DNA of 62,000 nt, from NCBI GenBank assembly GCA_951406725.2, contig OX597815.1, forward strand, positions 35,670,001 through 35,732,000, given 5' to 3'. A model generated the notes under the pieces. That model ran no database searches, was not told the DNA's origin, and was given only the letters and a program-made list of their open reading frames with translations. Of this stretch, positions 9,251 to 62,000 are shown piece after piece. Source of the stretch: Octopus vulgaris. Its lineage: Eukaryota. Both the position numbers and the translations under genes were made by a program. Numbering within the stretch: position 1 is the stretch's first letter; each line of letters opens with the position of its first letter.

Positions 9251-9966
9251 GGAGTGTCCGGGAGGATCATGATCCCCACAGCAACAAATGTGAACTAGTC
9301 TTGGTAAGAACAGACCGAACTATAGAGTAGGAGACCTAACTATAAAAGGATATAGACTCGAATTTAATATGACAAATGCATTAATGAATATATCTAATAA
9401 AGTTGCACAAGGTCTGACATATTAGTAGAACACCCGAATTCATTTACTCAGACGCCTTTTTTCTTGTGCAACGTGGCGCAGGGTGAGCAGTCAATAACAA
9501 CAAAATGACAAGATTTTGAAAATTCAGTTTTGTTTCCAATTTTTGTACCAGGATAACTTCTTATCACTAAGATGAAACTATATAAAACTATATATATTCT
9601 GAACATATACCTAATGGTGAGTATAAAAATCTAAAAAATACAGCATTTGGAACTACTCTAAATATGAAGTTTTATCCCCTGAAAATGAGTCAAAATTAAA
9701 TTCTCACTATGGTAGGTAGTTCAGAACTGCGAAAATCGATTAGAAAAACTTTAGAACCTGGAAATGGCTATACAAAAATTACGAAGTGATTGATCAATGG
9801 GACCTCATACATTTATAATATCTTTATAGATTCAGGGGGGGGGGGGGCGAAAAGAAGAAAGATTCTTCTAGTCTCATATTGAGAGTTGATGGGTCAACCA
9901 TAAAAGTTTTCTTAGACCATATTTTGCCTCCAAAGTTGAATAACAATTAGTAAAACGAGTAAAATG

Positions 9967-15582: not shown

Positions 15583-18500
15583 ATACTTTGATACTTTGAT
15601 ACTTTGATAGGTTTCGGCCATTATTGGCCCAGGCCATGTCTAACTTAATAGCACCACCTGGTGAAGTCTTTCAAGTCAGAATTTGGGCACTATGGCCCAC
15701 TCAAGTAGAGAGTTATTGTTTGCAGAGACATATCCGGGTGTAGGGGGTTTATCCGGGATTTCTTGAAAGAATCTGTCCAAAGACTTCTTGAACCCTATAG
15801 GGTCAGTTTCTGTTTTAATGTGTTTTGGTGTAATGTTAAAGAGAGCGGGGCCAATTGAGGTGAAATAATTGTGCCGTATTGTTGTTATGAGATGAGAGTG
15901 CGATTTTTGTTTTGGGCGGATGGCACGGGGCCCAAGCCTTGGATGTACCTTAAAGGTGATGCCAACATCATTTGGGCAATGCTGATGGAATATTTTCCAC
16001 ATCATGCAGATGATGTAGCGCTCACGACGACGTTGGAGAGAATAGAGTTTTAGCTTTTCTAGTCGACCCCAATAGTCGAGGCCTGTCATGCCATCTATCT
16101 TTTTTGTGATTGCCCTTTGAGGTGCTTCAACTTTTATGATACCTTGTATTGTGTGGGGAGACCACAGTGGACAACAGTATTCAAGGTGGGGTCGGACAAA
16201 AGTGGAGAAGAGAAGGATAATGGTGTGGATATCTCTCGACTGGAAAGTTCTGAGAATCCAGGAACACATTCTGCGGGCCATGTCAACTTTGGTGTTTATA
16301 TGAGTGGCCCAGCTTACGTTGTTGTCCACAATTACTCCCAAGTCTCTGATGTTGTTGGACGCCGCGAGAGTTTCACCTGAAGGAAGGGAGTATGGGAGTT
16401 TCAGGGCATCCTCTTTTCCAAAGTGGATTAGCTCAAATTTATCCTCGTTCAGCAGCATATTGTTTTTTTCTGCCCATTGGATAACAGCCAGTAGATCTGA
16501 CTGAAGGCATGTCCGGTCACCCGCCTCATTTATGACCTTCTGTAGCTTGGAGTCATCTGCAAAGATTTTTATGTTGCTGTGCTTGATGATGTCATTAATG
16601 TCATTAATGTAAATGATGAAAAGAAGTGGGCCCAGCACAGTGCCTTGCGGAACGCCACTACTGACTTTGGCTGGGCTTGATTTTACCCCTTCAACTACAA
16701 CATGTTGAGATCTGTCTGTCAGGAAACACTTAATCCATTTCAGTAACTTTCCAGAGACACCAATGTTGGATAGTTTTTTCAATAGGATCTTGTGATCGAC
16801 CCTGTCGAAGGCCTTACTGAAATCAAGGTAGATGACATCGGTGTTGGAGCCCTCTCCCAAAGCTCTCAAAATGTCCTCAAAGTGATGCAGGAGCTGCGTT
16901 AGGCAGTCCCTTCCATTACGGAACCCATGTTGGTTGGAGATCAGCCGTCTGTTGCTTTCCAGAAATTGGGTTATTCGAGATCTCACCACCCTCTCAAATA
17001 CCTTGATGATATGAGAGGTGAGTGAGATCGGACGGTAATTCACTGCAAGGGACTTGTTTCCCTTTTTGAAAACTGGGACAACAGACTGGGACAGAAGGTT
17101 TTTTGGAATATAGCCAGCATCCAGTGAGTTTCTCCACAGATTAGCAAGGGGAGATGCAAGTTGGTGTCGACACACCTTCAGGACACAAGCAGGGAACCTA
17201 TCGGGGCCTACTGCTGAATTGTGTTTTATTTCGTTTATCGCCGCTAAGACATCAGGGGCACTAAATGTTATGTCCGATATAGTGTGTTGGGGGTTGACAT
17301 CACTGATACAGCCCAGATCGGCCATATCAGGATTGCTGAAAACAGAGCAGTATTGTTTCTGCAGTATCTCGGCCATGGATTTGGCATTATCTTGGAGAGT
17401 GCCAGTTTCGTCAATTAGAGGGCCTACAGTGGAGACAGTGACCCTGCGTTTCCTCGCAAATGAAAAGAACACTTTGGGGTTGAGTTTGATTTTTTCAATG
17501 GCCCACTTCTCCTCAGCTGATCTTTGGTTATTGATGAGGGTCTTCATGCATTGTTGGAGGTTATATTTTTTGGATTCAAGCAGTGCGATAGCCGTCGAAT
17601 GTGTGTGCTGCTGTTGGCAGTACTTTAGTTTGTTAATTTTTTTGTTTGTTCTTTTTATTTTTCTGATAATGGTTTTTCTGTTTTGGGGGATTCTGCACTT
17701 TTTGTTCACAGGTCTTGGTGGGGAGTGTTTTGCACATATGTCTGTGACGGTGTCTACAAAGATCTGCCAAGATGTTTTATGGTTGGTGGAGATGTGTGTA
17801 TGTGTAAAGGACCAGTCAACATTTGATAGCTCGTTCCTGATTGCATCCCAGTTGGCTTTATGGAGATCCATGTTGTCAAATGGGTGGGCTGGAGGAAGGT
17901 CACTAGGATTAGCTTTCGGCTGGTGGAATTTCATGTTACAGAGAACCATGTCATGGTCTGAAAGAAGGGTTTTTTCCACTGTAACGTTATGTATAGTGTT
18001 AGTGTGGTTACTAAACACTAGGTCCAAAATGTTCTGATGTCTTGTTGGTGCAAGGACAAGTTGGGACAAGAAAAACTCATTCGTAAAGTCGAAAAGTGAC
18101 TCTGCTGCTTCTTTGTCAGCGGTTGAGGCGGGAGTGCTTGGTTTCAAACAGTTTGTAGTCCAGTCAACACAGGGTAGATTGAAGTCTCCCATCATGAGTA
18201 TGTTGCTAGAATGGCACTGTTGAATAAAGCACTTAATGCTGTTGAGGCATTCTTTAAAGCACAGTATGGGTGTTTGGGGCGGCCTATAGAGCCCAATTAC
18301 TGTCAGGTCATTGGCTTTGTTGTGCACGGTGACTGATTCACAGTAGCCGTTGGAGAATATACTATTTCCATCTGCCGTAAATGAATCATGCAGGAAAATG
18401 GCAGTTCCACCCTTCCTCCTGCCGATACGATCCGCGCGGATGGTTGTGAAATTCTTCACTCTCACTTCGGCTTCCAAGTGGGAGTTGTCAAGGTGGGTCT

Positions 18501-18905
18501 CAGTGAGAATGAAGAAAGGGATGTGGTGTGAATGGTTACCAACCCAGTCTTCAATGAATTGGACCTTCCATTTTTGTGCATTGATGGAAGGGCTGACACC
18601 TTGTGCATTGAGTAGGAATGTGGAGGTTAGTGTAGTGGCTGGTTTTGACTGTTGCAGGGGGCTTGGATTTTGTGTGTGTGTTAGTGGCAGCAATGTGGGG
18701 AATTGGTGCACTGGGGTAATAGCATAGGATGGTGTTGAGTGATGGCTAGAATGTTTTTGTGTATCTCTTTTGCCATGTTCAACATGGCTAAAAAGAATTT
18801 TCCTGCTTAGGGAGCAGTTTTTGGCTGGAGGTGTGGTTGCACTGTTGGATAGGGTTGTAGTTTCCACTTTTGTTGTTGTTGTTTTTGTGTCTTCCTGAAA
18901 AGACA
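15583..18905 (-). mobile_element. Young 5'-truncated CR1/L2-group LINE in a (TA)n tract
   Basis: Uninterrupted ORF2, short 3' UTR and (ATCAAAGT)3 tail (plus-strand ATACTTTG x3 at 15583-15606). Both ends abut (TA)n. Confidence 0.95.
15676..18900 (-). CDS. LINE ORF2p: APE endonuclease + reverse transcriptase, no internal stops
   Basis: APE motifs LNAQG, TETHL, GLYRPP, MGDFN, ILDLVF, LSDH. RT motifs [39 protein letters not shown]...W.P. The 'M' start in the ORF track lies inside the microsatellite. Confidence 0.93.
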
Positions 18906-19045
18906 CATATATATATACATATATATACATATACATATAAATATATATATATATACATACATATACATATATATACATATATATATATATATATATTGTA
19001 TACATATATATATATGTATATATATTATATATATATATATATATG

Positions 19046-21213: not shown

Positions 21214-21920
21214 ATATATATGCATATATATGTGCGTGAGTGCGTCTATCTGTGCGTGTGTGTGTGTATGCGTGTGTGTTGAACGATGTGTAGAATATTT
21301 ATAATGCATATATCAACTTATAATTTCTAGTGCCTATATTTACATACATACATACACACATACATACATACATACATACATACATACATACATACATACA
21401 TACATACATACAAACAAAGTTAATACTCTGTGATATAAGGTAACGATATGATACCTGAGGTTTAGCCTTTCTGAAAGCAGACTATCCTTCAAGGAATGAA
21501 TTAAAAGAAAGAAACTTGCGCTGTGGCCTTAATGCCTTTTTCCATCACCCTATGCAGCCGTATATACGAAATCCCCATGTGAAGTAAATTTACGCAACGA
21601 AATCGAAGTAAAATTGCCGCGTTATTCGAAAACGGATATTCATTATTATTGATTGGATAGTAAAGTCGATGAAGTAATCAAAAATATTCGGTAATCTAGT
21701 TCAAGCGTTAGAATAACTAAAGTGTAAATAAATCCTTGACCGTATTCAATGAGCGGGTTTTTACACAAATATAACAGTACAGTTCTTAATACCTGTTCTG
21801 AAGGTAATATACCCGTGTAATTACATATCCGCATAAATTTTAATATTTGAATTCTTTCTGCTAGTAATAAATTCCTGTCGTCTCTGTTGTGTGTAATGTT
21901 TGTTGTTACGGCGCATTCAA

Positions 21921-22062
21921 TGACGTCAATTTGCGTTGGAGGTGCGGCTTCTTAATAAAAACGGAGGGGTGGAGCTTAGCCATATACGGCTGAAGTGGGA
22001 AATTAAACTGAAATGAGATCAGACAGCTATATAAGCTATCACGGCGTTACGAAACTTTATTC
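21921..22062 (+). promoter_or_regulatory. Candidate cAMP-responsive core promoter: CRE, CArG-like box, TATA, Inr
   Basis: TGACGTCA 21921-21928. CCATATACGG 21980-21989 (one mismatch to CC(A/T)6GG). TATATAAG 22028-22035. Inr-like TTATTC with its A at 22059, 31 nt after the TATA start. No ATG between 22059 and the ORF ATG. Confidence 0.65.
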
Positions 22063-22306
22063 TGAAACTTTGACACTCACCAACGAAGTACACAGTGAAA
22101 TAGTGAAATATCTGAAGTGAGAAACACTCGACTTATAAATTCAAATCGAGGAACTTTTTAAAACTAAACTAAACGAAAGAAGGTACAGTGAAATATTTAT
22201 TTGAACTTTCATCTAATTTCATACAGACTTCGCTCAGCAATATTGCATAATATCGTCGCTGCCCTGTGAATTTTCTTACCAAACAAATTATTTCTATTTC
22301 ATCAAC

Positions 22307-22933
22307 ATGCTTGATAACGAAGTATATTTGAAATACGGACCCTACCGTCGCATTCGCAGAAATGCTTTGGCCAATATAATGGAAGGGTTAAATCAAGAAG
22401 CCGTTAACTGGCTGTCGAAAAATATTGCACATCAGTCCAATTCGGTTGACCATCGATGTGAGAAATATACTGATGATGAAAGTAACGTTAGTGGTGATGA
22501 AGGCGACGATGAAAATGAGAATGATGATGACGACGACGATGACGATGCCGGAGGCGTTGAAACCGTCGAAGAAAAAAAAGATGGGAAATATCTGGCTATA
22601 GATGAAGAGAAATCCGTGTTAAATCAGGAAAATAATGAAGGCATTACCTGCCAGAACGATTCTGAATTAAACAAGGCGGATTGTTTCAGACGTCTGAGTT
22701 CACCTATGGAATGTCGATTCCAGTCGTCATTTGCGGCGATCCGGCGGAATGCTTTACACAATTTATTGGAAACATTAACACCAGCCGAAATCTCAACACT
22801 TGGCAAGTTGTATCAGTTGCAACATTCTGTGAAGGACTTAACTTTAGAACAAGAGCGATTCGATCACTTGGTGACACCTGTTCAATACCCATACATTGAG
22901 ACATATTTCGACAAATATTTAACCCAAGTATGA
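22307..22933 (+). CDS. Intronless 208-aa acidic protein with two PKI-like pseudosubstrate motifs (candidate tandem PKA inhibitor)
   Basis: Non-repeat ORF with CAACATG start context. Internal repeat IRRNAL.N..E.L (R17-L21 and R146-L150), Asp/Glu linker, RRLS, NES-like L168-L180, C-terminal TQV. That it is a real CDS is better supported than its function. Confidence 0.8.
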   Translation: MLDNEVYLKYGPYRRIRRNALANIMEGLNQEAVNWLSKNIAHQSNSVDHRCEKYTDDESNVSGDEGDDENENDDDDDDDDAGGVETVEEKKDGKYLAIDEEKSVLNQENNEGITCQNDSELNKADCFRRLSSPMECRFQSSFAAIRRNALHNLLETLTPAEISTLGKLYQLQHSVKDLTLEQERFDHLVTPVQYPYIETYFDKYLTQV

Positions 22934-23526
22934 TTGAAGATATTGCAACAAACGGAAGAGAAAATAAAATCATTTTAAATGTTTTAAAATGCCGAGAAAA
23001 AAAAACTGAAGCATGCGTTTCTATGAAAATTCCTTATCGGTCAAAATTTCTGAAATGAGCAGAAAGAAGAAAGAAATTATACCAAGTAGGGCGAAATGAG
23101 ATAGAACAGGATTTTGTCCATAGAAACAAAGCAACGAACAAACCTTTTTCACTAAAATCTCTGCTCATAAAAAGCAGACGACCGATTGAATGGGCTTACA
23201 GAAAATATGTATGGTGAGCAGAGATTGTGCATATGTTATGCATTTTGTGTTTTCTCAATTAGCATGCAGTTTTGTTTTGATTAATTTATATATTTTCTGC
23301 GTGCGAAATATTTGATGACTAACAATTTGTTAACGAGAAATAATGGATAAGAAGCATAAAATGTTTCGAAGTAAACTCTATATTGTTCAAAAGGAAAAAA
23401 GAAAAAAAAAACGAACAAAGAAAAGAAAATGGAAGAAAAAAGATCGACTAACCCGTATTGAATGAGAGACGAAAGAATTTCTTTTTGAATTTTTTTTTAA
23501 CTGGAATGCTTACATAATTCGTTCGC

Positions 23527-29033: not shown

Positions 29034-29070
<37 letters not shown>

Positions 29071-29072
<2 letters not shown>

Positions 29073-30347
29073 CATAAGGGACTAAAGCCATCTGAATATG
29101 GCTAGGGACAGGGCAGGGTGGTGGGGGTGTTACTGTTGCATTTAGCCCCAGGCGAACATCGACGTCACCAGAAAGGCTCGACACCGTCACGGTGCCCTAA
29201 ACCTGCAAAGGGAGGTAATTCCCCGATGAAGCGGAAACCACACACGGACCATGGTTTCAAGGTGTATTGCCTATCATCGGCGTGTGGTAGGCCTCCGCTT
29301 CCTCGACGAATTCTCACTATGCAGGATTTCTTATATAGATTTTCAAGCAAAATACATTTGCTGATTTCGAAAATCTGTTCGAAAGCAATAATAATTCTCT
29401 AAAAGGGATATAGACAGTAACTGCTCGATAACATAAGGGACTAAAGCCATCTGAATATGGCTAGGGACAGGGCAGGGTGGTGGGGGTGTTACTGTTGCAT
29501 TTAGCCCCAGGCGAACATCGACGTCACCAGAAAGGCTCGACACCGTCACGGTGCCCTAAACCTGCAAAGGGAGGTAATTCCCCGATGAAGCGGAAACCAC
29601 ACACGGACCATGGTTTCAAGGTGTATTGCCTATCATCGGCGTGTGGTAGGCCTCCGCTTCCTCGACGAATTCTCACTATGCAGGATTTCTTATATAGATT
29701 TTCAAGCAAAATACATTTGCTGATTTCGAAAATCTGTTCGAAAGCAATAATAATTCTCTAAAAGGGATATAGACAGTAACTGCTCGATAACATAAGGGAC
29801 TAAAGCCATCTGAATATGGCTAGGGACAGGGCAGGGTGGTGGGGGTGTTACTGTTGCATTTAGCCCCAGGCGAACATCGACGTAACACCCCCACCACCCT
29901 GCCCTGTCCCTAGCCATATTCAGATGGCTTTAGTCCCTTATGTTATCGAGCAGTTACTGTCTATATCCCTTTTAGAGAATTATTATTGCTTTCGAACAGA
30001 TTTTCGAAATCAGCAAATGTATTTTGCTTGAAAATCTATATAAGAAATCCTGCATAGTGAGAATTCGTTGAGGAAGCGGAGGCCTACCACACGCCGATGA
30101 TAGGCAATACACCTTGAAACCATGGTCCGTGTGTGGTTTCCGCTTCATCGGGGAATTACCTCCCTTTGCAGGTTTAGGGCACCGTGACGGTGTCGAGCCT
30201 TTCTGGTGACGTCGATGTTCGCCTGGGGCTAAATGCAACAGTAACACCCCCACCACCCTGCCCTGTCCCTAGCCATATTCAGATGGCTTTAGTCCCTTAT
30301 GTTATCGAGCAGTTACTGTCTATATCCCTTTTAGAGAATTATTATTG

Positions 30348-36546: not shown

Positions 36547-37018
36547 GGTCAACGGTTAAAGTCCAACACTGGATAGCTCATGGAAATTGTAAATTTAAGA
36601 GAAATCAAGTAACAACGGGAAAATGCTGAAATTACATACACGTACCCATAACTTATTGCTTTCCCAATAATTCCTTCCGATGTTTTTTCAGCTAAATTAA
36701 ATAATTACTATGACGTTAGTAATCATTGAAATAAGGAATTATGTGACGTCAATACGAGCCTGCCTTTATTAATCATTTCAGAGTTAAATACACATAAAGA
36801 ATAGAGACATTCTTTCTGCTGATTATATTATTGGTAAGGCAAAGCAGTTGGTTGAATCGATCCGTGAATCCATATGAACACTTTTGTTGCCATTCAATAC
36901 CGTATTAACCGAGTAACAATACCGTATTAACCGTGTGCGCTGGGCTTTTCATTTTCAGCAGCAGCGCGTTAAATGCTTTTATCACTCTTTTTTTTTAATC
37001 TTTAACTGGTTTCAGTCA

Positions 37019-46339: not shown

Positions 46340-47342
46340 GGAAGGCGGCGAGCTGGCAGAAACGATAGCACGCCGGGCGAGGTGCTGAGCGGTGTTTCGT
46401 CTGCCGTTACGTTCTGAGTTCAAATTCCGCTGAGGTCGACTTTGCCTTTCATCCATTCGGGGTCGATAAATTAAGTACCAGTTACGCACTAGGGTCGATG
46501 TAATTGGCCTAATCCGTTTGTCTGTCCTTGTTTGTCCCCTCTATGTTTAGCCCCTTGTAGGCAATAAAGAAATAAGAAACGTTAGCACGCCGGGTAAAAT
46601 GCTTAGCAGTATTTCGTCTGCCGCTACGTTCTGAGTTTAAATTCCGCCGAGGTCGGCTTTGCCTTTCATCCTTTCGGGGTCGATAAATTAAGTATCAGTT
46701 ACGCACTGGGGTCGATGTAATCGACTTAATCCCTTTGTCTCTCCTTGTTTGTCCCTCTGTGTTTAGCCCCTTCTGGGTAGTAAAGAAATAGGTATTTCGT
46801 CTGTCGTAACGTTTTGAGTTCAAATTCTGCCAAGGTCGACTTTGCCTTTCATCCTCTCGGAGTCGATTAAATAAGTACCAGTTACGCACTGGGGTCGATA
46901 TAATCGACTTAATCCCTTTGTCTCTCCTTGTTTGTCCCCTCTGTGTTTAGCCCCTTCTGGGTAGTAAAGAAATAGGTATTTCGTTTGTCGTTACGTTCTG
47001 AGTTCAAATTCCGCCGAGGTCGACTTTGCCTTTCATCCTCTCGGGGTCGATTAAATAAGTACCAGTTACGCACTGGGGTCGGTATAATCGACTTAATCTG
47101 TTTGTCTCTCCTTGTTTGTCCCCTCTGTGTTTAGCCCCTTGTGGGTAGTAAAGAAATAGGTATTTCGTCTGTCGTTACGCTCTGAGTTCAAATTCTGCCG
47201 AGGTCGACTTTGTCTTTCATCCTTTCGGGGTAGATAAATAAAGTACCAGTTTCGCAATTGGGTCGTTGTAATCGACTTAATCCTTTTGTATGTCCTTGTT
47301 TGTCCCCTCTATGTTTAGCCCCTTGTGAATAATAAAGAAATA
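46340..47342 (+). mobile_element. Head-to-tail pentamer of SINE B inside one TSD
   Basis: One full unit, one head-trimmed unit and three ~184-bp units. TSD TATATTTTTGTTCAAA at 46324-46339 and 47343-47358. Confidence 0.93.
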
Positions 47343-47575
47343 TATATTTTTGTTCAAATTTTAATTTATTTTATTTTTTTCTTGGATTTAATGATTGTAT
47401 ATGACCCTAGGTTAGTTCGGATCGAACGGATTTATGATCAAAAATATTCCAACTGCAAGAGCACCGACACTTTTTTCTCAGATATTGTTTATCCTTGGCT
47501 TACCTTATTTAATGTATCCTTCCTCGCATGGCTTTTAAGATAATAGGCAAGATCGGCGCGGGCAGGATGTTATCT

Positions 47576-61483: not shown

Positions 61484-62000
61484 TATAAAACACCATTACC
61501 TCTTAGCGTTTTTGAGAAAAGTTTATGTTTACAAAGTTATTTCGTGTTGAAATTCTCGTATTTCGCTAATTTCAACCAATCAATGACGTGTATTCAGCTG
61601 AATAAAATTACTACCGTTGTTTGTCAACAACAACTATCGGCGGCGTATTTTTCATTTGTCACTGTTATTTATGACATTGTTCGTGCGTTTGTACTGGTTT
61701 TAGCTTTAAGGTTTTAGGATTAGGGTTAGGGTTTTAGGGTTAGGGTTAGGTTTTTAGAGTTAGGGTTAAGGTTTTAGGGTTAGGGTTTGGGTTTTAGAGT
61801 TAGGGTTGTAATAAATAACAGTGACAAACGAAATATGCACCGCCGGAAGTTCTTGTTGACAAACAACAGCAGTAATTTTATTCAGCTGAATACACGTCAT
61901 TGATTGGTTGAAATTACCGAAATACGAGAACTTCAACACGAAATAATTTTGTAAACATAAACCTTTCTCAAAAACACTAAGAGTAAATGGTATTTTTATA
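61484..62000. mobile_element. Foldback element with ~190-bp inverted arms and a telomere-like core; truncated by the window end
   Basis: Arms at 61484-61676 and 61807-62000. The core has degenerate (TTAGGG)n/(TTTTAGGG)n at about 61710-61806. Confidence 0.88.

Follow-up and report, generated by a model that had tools for sequence, protein, structure and literature searches.

The stretch of DNA analyzed here, referred to below as the window, is a 62-kb segment of Octopus vulgaris chromosome OX597815.1 (assembly GCA_951406725.2), and unless otherwise noted all positions are given in its coordinates. Positions 21921 to 22063 appear to hold the core promoter of a gene that lacks introns and is seemingly confined to coleoids; on the evidence of sequence comparison, and for the promoter part alone, we consider it very likely that this is a genuine and deeply conserved element. 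It brings together a full cyclic AMP (cAMP) response element (CRE), a CArG-like box, a TATA box, and an initiator-like sequence. The open reading frame (ORF) that follows (record positions 35,692,307 to 35,692,933) predicts a protein with two motifs resembling the pseudosubstrate of PKI, the inhibitor of protein kinase A (PKA). An initial annotation of the window had proposed that PKA activates CREB, that CREB induces this gene, and that the product in turn shuts off PKA. A chain of this kind, in which CREB and SRF would fire a gene for a tandem pseudosubstrate that damps PKA, is the best explanation on offer, and we judge the chances that it is right or wrong in its entirety to be evenly balanced.

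Conservation of the promoter

Direct reading of the DNA agreed with the initial annotation on the position of every motif that it had named, i.e., the CRE, the CArG-like box, the TATA box, the A of the initiator, and a bZIP-like site farther upstream (Table 1). The window has a composition typical of cephalopod DNA, with about 36% G+C and a high density of microsatellites, and taken singly the CRE, CArG, and TATA motifs are not enriched in it: TGACGTCA occurs twice (0.75 expected), a perfect CArG occurs six times (5.3 expected), and TATATAAG occurs 12 times (8.0 expected), each of which is close to the level of chance. Conservation was therefore taken as the evidence instead.

We compared the DNA around the orthologous genes of a closely related octopod (locus L003), Argonauta, two Sepia species, and a decapodiform assembly, ERZ21867824. 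Between Octopus and Argonauta, identity is 0.41 to 0.43 in the upstream flank and the 5' untranslated region (UTR), which is close to the noise level for AT-rich DNA, and it rises to 0.58 to 0.62 over the core (21915 to 22070). Peaks of 0.75 to 0.85 coincide with the GT/GC box and CArG, the TATA box, and the initiator, the highest being that over the GT/GC box region (0.80 to 0.85). The blocks shared with Argonauta are TGACGTCA, TGGAGGTGCGG, GAGGGG[T/C]GGAGCTTAGCC-[A/T]T[A/T]TA[C/T]GG, CTATATAA, and CTT[T/C]ATTCT. The TATA block CTATATAA is kept in L003 as well, the Argonauta initiator reads TCATTC at TATA+32, and cuttlefish carry TGAGGGAGC, a relative of TGGAGGTGCGG, at the equivalent relative position.

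The initial annotation had let its reading depend on conservation of the CRE, and the full element is indeed kept in all eight genomic loci of the gene family that were examined (six of six in group A, to which the window gene belongs, and two of two in a paralogous group B). The cephalopod genomic loci surveyed, 144 kb in all, contain eight full CREs, six of them inside promoters of this PKI-like family; the background probability of finding at least one CRE per 300 nt is 0.004. A homologous and perfect CArG is found in L003 (CCATATATGG), Argonauta (CCTTTTATGG), Sepia (CCTTATATGG), and ERZ21867824 (CCTTATTTGG), and the spacing from CRE to CArG is 59 nt in five of six loci (O. vulgaris, L003, and those of cuttlefish type) and 67 nt in Argonauta. 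One group-B locus of the two, like the cuttlefish group-A loci, has a TATATAA[AG]. The full CRE, the perfect CArG, and a TATA box thus stand together upstream of the ortholog in two Sepia species and a third decapodiform assembly, and the cuttlefish promoter has two extra half-CREs within 65 nt upstream of its TATA box. The spacing of CRE and TATA box in other cephalopods, to which the initial annotation had also pointed, is another matter: both elements are kept, but the distance between them varies from 107 nt in O. vulgaris to 114 to 128 nt in other octopods and 223 to 235 nt in decapodiforms. The group-B promoters are built somewhat differently: that of ERZ21867824 combines two full CREs with an inverted CCAAT and TATATAAG, and that of an octopod has one full CRE and an inverted CCAAT. 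We take the conservation of these footprints from Octopus to Argonauta, together with that of the CRE, CArG, and TATA box in cuttlefish, to mean that the CRE, CArG, TATA box, and initiator are under selection and that the promoter is real.

The bZIP-like site TTACGCAA fared less well. It is present where the initial annotation had placed it, but it is kept only in L003, whose upstream region is about 79% identical throughout, and it is absent from the Argonauta and cuttlefish promoters; it is without support as a functional element and was dropped as such. Two further candidates were rejected. The promoter is not carried by a repeat or transposon, since the region is single-copy, with no second copy in the window or in the other loci, and it is not part of a noncoding RNA feature, the Rfam matches being microsatellite look-alikes far below threshold.

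Table 1. Coordinates of the promoter elements, transcript parts, and coding features of the PKI-like gene in the window
Feature	Position	Strand	Remarks
C/EBP/PAR-bZIP-like site TTACGCAA	21590-21597	+	Present; kept only in the close octopod L003
Full palindromic CRE TGACGTCA	21921-21928	.	Direct reading; 138 nt upstream of predicted +1
Conserved block TGGAGGTGCGG	21937-21947	+	Identical in O. vulgaris, L003, and Argonauta
GT/GC box GAGGGGTGGAGCTTAG, Sp/KLF-like, adjoining CArG	21964-21979	+	GGGGTGG in Octopus, GGGGCGG in Argonauta
CArG-like box CCATATACGG, SRF-site type	21980-21989	.	One C (21987) within the A/T core, i.e., one mismatch
TATA box TATATAAG	22028-22035	+	107 nt downstream of CRE
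Initiator-like TTA(+1)TTCT	22057-22063	+	Predicted start site A at 22059, 31 nt past the first T of TATA
Predicted unspliced 5' UTR, 248 nt	22059-22306	+	No ATG; RNA contig L002 collinear through 5' UTR
Conserved 5'-UTR block CAGTGAAATATTTATTTGAA	22186-22205	+	Octopus-Argonauta identity peak 0.85 (UTR average, 0.41)
Intronless ORF, 208 aa, tandem PKI-like, group A, C-terminal -TQV	22307-22933	+	ATG 22307, TGA 22931-22933
Pseudosubstrate-like motif 1, RRNAL, aa 17-21	22355-22369	+	Arg at P-6 as PKI Arg15, by sequence reading
Pseudosubstrate-like motif 2, RRNAL, aa 146-150, then HNLLETLT	22742-22756	+	Gapless hhalign pairing with PKI-alpha
3' UTR, minimum extent	22934-23441	+	L002 collinear for 508 nt past the stop codon

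Transcript, start site, and leader

An RNA contig, L002, encodes an octopod ortholog with 81% identity to the window protein; it comes from run SRR3401912, which is described as an octopus meta-transcriptome (PMC11662614). Its first base corresponds to a position near 22070 of the window, which is roughly 12 nt past the predicted +1 and 42 nt past the TATA box. From there the contig runs collinear with the genome across the 5' UTR and the coding sequence and on for 508 nt of the 3' UTR, from which it follows that the gene is transcribed and is intronless over that span. In Sepia, four contigs of different runs begin at a single base, which lies 48 nt past the TATA box, and all four match the S. 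pharaonis genome collinearly; at least one of the four derives from documented S. esculenta RNA sequencing (RNA-seq). The octopod and Sepia contigs alike bear out the description of the gene as intronless, and they show the compact, intron-poor transcription unit looked for in an immediate-early gene. The cuttlefish ortholog and its paralog are each found in more than 100 sequencing runs in the Logan contig collection.

An upstream coding exon was considered and rejected because of an in-frame stop at 22214, 93 nt upstream of the ATG, and the collinear RNA contigs. Between that stop and the ATG at 22307 there are only two AG dinucleotides, neither of which is conserved.

The initial annotation had drawn attention to the lack of ATG in the leader. 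This is true of O. vulgaris and mildly unusual, with none found between 22059 and 22306 where 3.65 are expected (P = 0.02 to 0.03 from a Poisson calculation or a Markov model of the leader itself, and 0.001 from a model of the surrounding 5 kb); segments of 248 nt that are free of ATG make up 2 to 3% of all such segments in the sequence. However, the feature is specific to O. vulgaris. Every relative (other octopods, Argonauta, and cuttlefish) has an in-frame ATG 60 to 75 nt upstream of the conserved MLDN start (L003, 997 to 999; L002, 167 to 169; L007, 10001 to 10003; L024, 9926 to 9928), where O. vulgaris has ATA (22244 to 22246). The upstream ATG has a poor Kozak context, the 20 to 25 extra residues are not conserved in sequence, and it is possibly an alternative start used through leaky scanning. 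Cuttlefish leaders also carry short upstream ORFs. The conserved block within the leader, CAGTGAAATATTTATTTGAA, has a relative, CAGTGGAAATTTATTTC, in the leader of the ERZ21867824 ortholog (L009, about 9751 to 9767), and this block could be a translational or a downstream promoter element.

The gene family

Orthologs of the window protein are 94% identical in O. bimaculoides, 81 and 85% identical in two other octopods, 60% identical in Argonauta hians, and 33 to 38% identical in cuttlefish (Acanthosepion/Sepia pharaonis, with further contigs from Sepia esculenta runs). The family consists of two paralog groups, of which group B, examined at two genomic loci, has proteins that start with MTGE... 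and end with ...HECKA. Family proteins are 189 to 251 aa long. In each listed member the RRNA[L/M] motif, with its invariant RRNA, occurs exactly twice, both times within a homologous unit of 27 residues, (I/V/T)RRNAL-x-(N/D)-(I/L)-(L/M/F)-E-x-L, whereas the linkers are variable and either acidic or serine-rich. An exhaustive phmmer search with the single window protein and a word-limited profile search gave only cephalopod-type proteins, apart from two further matches that are repetitive false positives, and the family is apparently restricted to coleoids. In the databases its members are called "uncharacterized," "hypothetical," or "unnamed" throughout.

Two features of the proteins lie outside the RRNAL motifs. 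The group-A proteins end in T-x-V, a class-I PDZ-ligand pattern (window 22925 to 22933), as -LTQV in octopods and -ATHV in cuttlefish; this end is kept despite the overall identity of only 33 to 38%, and the corresponding end of group B is -HECKA. Upstream of motif 2 is the sequence RRLSSP (aa 128 to 133; window 22688 to 22705), whose RRLS forms a PKA-consensus phosphorylation site in octopods; Argonauta has RRFS in its place. The S-P next to it hardly varies within the family and may be a site for a proline-directed kinase.

Some of the database and assembly sequences have irregularities. When compared with Sepia, the group-A ortholog of ERZ21867824 is shifted in frame by 1 nt at about 10015 to 10025 of L009 (EAPHRRRR against EAPTDEEG), and its two halves, searched separately, are 94 and 77% identical to S. 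pharaonis; the shift may stem from an error of assembly or be a genuine lesion. The database proteins P0006, P0007, P0010, and P0012 continue with a "W" and an extra tail past the true C terminus, which inflates their stated lengths. For P0007 and P0012 the DNA (L009 and L010) has a TGA stop that the gene caller read as Trp, and editing of the stop codon in RNA was rejected for these tails because the DNA shows a plain TGA stop; the tails of P0006 and P0010 are assumed to reflect the same misreading. Family alignments were made with the ORFs trimmed at the true stop.

Resemblance of the product to PKI

The resemblance to PKI is found at the level of the motif. For each of the six relatives tested, the family that ranks first in Pfam is PKI (PF02827), with E values of 5e-4 to 0.26 and scores of 12 to 20.7 bits, all of them below the 25-bit gathering threshold. 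When a profile of 12 motif instances was searched against all PDB chains, the best three matches were PKI-alpha (E = 0.006, 0.058, and 0.37), followed by chance occurrences of RRNAL in ribosomal protein S7. An hhalign comparison of the family with PKI-alpha (the sequence of which was verified against PDB 3wyg) gave a probability of 62% and paired FQSSFAAIRRNALHNLLET with FIASGRTGRRNAIHDILVS without gaps, such that Phe138 falls on PKI Phe10 (F138...RRNALHNLL and, in PKI-alpha, F...RRNAIHDIL). In a BLASTP search both motifs of a group-B protein aligned to one and the same PKI segment. The upstream determinants of PKI are divided between the motifs: motif 2 has Phe at P-11 and lacks Arg at P-6, motif 1 has Arg at P-6 and Tyr or Leu in place of Phe, and motif 1 of group B has both Phe and Arg. 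The AlphaFold2 model of the protein is of low confidence overall, with a mean predicted local distance difference test score (pLDDT) of 51, and includes two helix-turn-helix units of moderate confidence (pLDDT values of 76 to 81).

A precedent for the motif comes from a viral microprotein, in which mutation of RRNAL impaired PKA binding and inhibition (bioRxiv 10.64898/2026.08.23.746553). The pentapeptide is identical, but the protein and its context are unrelated, and by analogy it serves as a precedent only for the compatibility of Leu at P+1 with PKA inhibition. A search with PKI-alpha gave only vertebrate proteins among the 120 matches listed and was uninformative about PKI in invertebrates. 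The label of a PKI-like ORF, applied in the initial annotation, holds at the level of the motif, PKI being the best match of the motif profile in PDB and of the relatives in Pfam, but not at the level of family scores. That the product works like PKI is the best reading of its sequence, and one toward which we lean slightly; membership in the PKI family is not established.

A proposed feedback loop and its alternatives

In the loop proposed here, cAMP and PKA, probably with Ca2+/MAPK signaling, would activate CREB-family and SRF-family factors, which would bind the CRE-CArG module and cause the TATA-dependent start near 22059 to fire. The short unspliced mRNA would yield a mostly disordered protein of 208 aa with two PKI-type RRNAL pseudosubstrates, and this protein would fill the substrate cleft of free PKA catalytic subunits, damping the pathway that induced it as a delayed negative feedback. 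We infer the binding factors, the inducibility, the immediate-early kinetics, and the inhibition of PKA by the product. Inducibility of the promoter we judge to be somewhat more likely than not. Robust induction by activity or forskolin is, in mouse neurons, the mark of promoters that have a TATA box within 300 bp of a consensus CRE (PMC5740062), and the O. vulgaris promoter has just such a full-site CRE with a TATA box nearby.

A number of observations weigh against this account. On the side of the promoter, the CRE, CArG, TATA box, and initiator from which the initial annotation proposed an immediate-early type are conserved, but the CArG of O. vulgaris is the sole imperfect copy, CC(A/T)6GG being perfect in the other five loci. 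Stress factors of the ATF family bind the CRE sequence TGACGTCA as well. The predicted start near 22059 is supported by the beginning of L002 about 12 nt downstream of it but is not proven. In Sepia a single sharp start is not established: contig L016, from a documented S. esculenta RNA-seq run, reaches 35 nt upstream of the TATA box, and contig L015 reaches 82 nt upstream of it. Start-site usage in Sepia may be heterogeneous, or an upstream or unprocessed signal may be present. None of the Logan transcript contigs codes for precisely the O. vulgaris protein, and that collection has no record of P0001, the protein of O. bimaculoides; the absence in Octopus is compatible with low basal expression, though it is only absence of evidence. 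On the side of the protein, the Pfam scan of the window ORF gave no significant match, to PKI or any other family, and to this and the sub-threshold scores of the relatives may be added that the similarity to PKI is limited to about 14 to 19 residues. AlphaFold2 places RRNAL inside a helix, the first of each unit, whereas an extended form is what would be expected of a pseudosubstrate. Reading by eye, without a formal scan, showed no evident nuclear export signal of the PKI type, and the leucine spacing after the motif, I-xx-L-xx-L-xx-L, matches no standard export-signal class by reading, with no predictor run. Finally, a literature search returned nothing for the protein accessions of the family.

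The judgments that we attach to this account and to its rivals are not shares of a single whole, and the first two rivals each dispute one step of it. The more credible of the two accepts an inducible promoter but holds that the product is not a PKA inhibitor and that there is no cAMP loop; instead, the RRNAL-x-[ND]-[IL]-[LFM]-E helices (Phi-xx-Phi-Phi/LxxLL) would dock on another partner, such as a nuclear receptor or co-activator, or the motifs would be pseudosubstrates for a different basophilic kinase, such as PKG or CaMK. The helix-turn-helix units of moderate confidence with RRNAL in the first helix would suit this explanation, as would the fit of LHNLL and LHDLL to LxxLL, the sub-threshold Pfam scores, a protein three times the length of PKI, and the lack of an evident PKI-type export signal. 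However, the residues that are invariant, R-R-N-A, are the exact pseudosubstrate core, whereas the leucines of LxxLL are not invariant (motif 1 reads L-A-N-I-M). PKI is the best match in PDB and Pfam, no other family recurs across all relatives, and the Phe at P-11 and Arg at P-6 of PKI are matched, each in one of the two motifs. Furthermore, AlphaFold2 often draws helices for linear motifs that fold conditionally. We consider a partner other than PKA to be on the unlikely side.

The second rival disputes the promoter step, in that the CRE-CArG module would set basal, tissue-specific, or stress-driven expression through ATF2/Jun, ATF4, or SRF-MRTF, with no cAMP immediate-early response, and the product would be a steadily expressed modulator. 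TGACGTCA is common to many bZIP dimers, and two papers indicate that many CRE-bearing genes are not cAMP-responsive (PMC5740062; PMC3671974). The presence of the cuttlefish ortholog in more than 100 runs, those identified being whole-larva RNA-seq, implies appreciable expression without stimulation, and the 900 nt downstream of the stop codon contain three ATTTA motifs but no defined destabilizing element. Against this, short intronless genes with a CRE and a serum response element (SRE) are typical of rapid-response genes, and the cuttlefish promoter adds its two half-CREs just upstream of the TATA box. The unresponsive class, moreover, is that of TATA-less promoters, whereas here a conserved TATA box lies 107 nt from a conserved full CRE, as in the responsive class (PMC5740062). 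We regard steady expression of this kind as quite unlikely. As for a chance cluster of motifs in AT-rich DNA beside an ORF that is not a gene, the single-motif frequencies and the lack of a Pfam domain would permit it, but it is effectively refuted by the conservation and transcript data, i.e., an ORF that is kept between Octopus and Sepia, its motif blocks invariant and its linkers variable, a gene that is transcribed, and promoter elements conserved as footprints.

The feedback loop can be carried further. Both paralogs may be wired to CREB, and group A also to SRF, with both encoding tandem-pseudosubstrate PKA inhibitors and with a spacing fixed ever since the octopod and cuttlefish lineages parted; the protein of group A would be made upon neuronal activity and parked on synaptic PDZ scaffolds, where it would switch off PKA locally. 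This extended version is speculative, and we think it doubtful.

Comparison with known systems

A CArG box is an SRF input typical of c-fos and Egr1. The octopus promoter resembles the vertebrate CRE/TATA promoters that also have an SRE, such as those of c-fos, Egr1, Nr4a1, and Dusp1, in its combination of a full CRE with a TATA box. It would count as "FT" in the notation of the CREB Target Gene database, which stands for a full CRE that is conserved and accompanied by a TATA box (PMC5740062). It differs from these promoters in that the downstream gene is a different, lineage-restricted one, in that no convincing Ets/TCF site was found beside the CArG when sought by eye, and in that the CRE and CArG form one module at a fixed spacing of 59 nt.

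The synaptic activity-responsive element (SARE) of Arc is a distal enhancer with CREB, MEF2, and SRF sites clustered within about 100 bp. The octopus DNA likewise has CREB-type and SRF-type sites in a compact and evolutionarily fixed module. Unlike the SARE, however, this module is promoter-proximal, about 40 to 110 nt from the TATA box in octopods, and no MEF2 consensus was seen by reading between its CRE and CArG.

The protein shares with PKI-alpha, -beta, and -gamma the sequence RRNA[I/L] followed by H-D/N-[IL]-L, a largely disordered character, and, in part, the upstream determinants, motif 2 having the Phe of P-11 and motif 1 the Arg of P-6. It is unlike them in having two motifs rather than one, a length of 189 to 251 aa rather than about 76, a T-x-V end in group A, and no evident export signal, and also in the sub-threshold scores of the family in PF02827 and its coleoid-only distribution in homolog searches. 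Well-known genes for cAMP-induced negative feedback are those for ICER (from the CREM P2 promoter), PDE4D, and SIK1. The octopus gene would share with them the logic by which a gene under CRE control gives rise to a product that turns off the cAMP/CREB pathway, but where those products act on transcription, on cAMP breakdown, and on the CRTC co-activator, respectively, the octopus product would act on the PKA catalytic subunit directly. No papers on a cAMP-inducible PKI were retrieved in a literature search.

Other features of the window

The only other full CRE of the window is the TGACGTCA at 36744, with a half-CRE, TGACGTTA, 27 nt upstream (region 36709 to 36751). There is no ORF or TATA box nearby, and this CRE may be a chance occurrence or a distal element. 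An intact long interspersed nuclear element (LINE) ORF of 1109 aa lies on the minus strand at 15676 to 19005, with AP-endonuclease and reverse-transcriptase domains (Pfam E = 3e-30), and its 5' end runs into a TA microsatellite. Two long-period tandem arrays, at 29069 to 29883 and 46358 to 47349, are made up of a 359-bp unit (2.3 copies, 100% identity) and of 184/217-bp units (2 to 4 copies, 88 to 91% identity). An interstitial telomere-like array at 61696 to 61807 has (TTAGGG)n interleaved with TTTTAGGG, in about five copies of a 20-bp unit.

Implications

The logic of a CRE-driven inhibitor of the cAMP pathway, promoters with CRE, SRE, and TATA box, and PKI-like pseudosubstrates are all known already. 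What is new is their combination in an unannotated and apparently coleoid-specific family of two-motif PKI-like proteins, with a CRE-CArG spacing that is kept across the split between octopods and decapodiforms. As judged from its sequence, a CRE/SRE/TATA promoter placed on a PKI-like gene is a plausible self-limiting brake on cAMP signaling, and each step of the proposed loop is accessible to standard assays.

Textbooks trace long-term plasticity in molluscs to the route from cAMP through PKA to CREB, and a CRE-driven PKA inhibitor, if that is what the gene encodes, would set the duration of the nuclear PKA signal. The tandem PKI-like family of cephalopods is also relevant to the question of whether PKI has an earlier origin than supposed or has been reinvented, because only vertebrate relatives of PKI were among the 120 matches listed in the PKI-alpha search. 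Cephalopod neuroscience is short of validated activity-induced genes; the sole study of immediate-early genes in octopus that we found has creb and egr1 as its only candidates. The promoter of about 140 bp, with its conserved CRE-CArG-TATA layout, is a candidate activity reporter, and the PKI-like gene may serve to mark cells with recent cAMP or activity signaling. If the product is indeed a PKA inhibitor that is made upon activity and parked on PDZ scaffolds, the gene would represent a new class of invertebrate immediate-early gene and would provide a ready promoter and marker for mapping neuronal activity in cephalopod brains.

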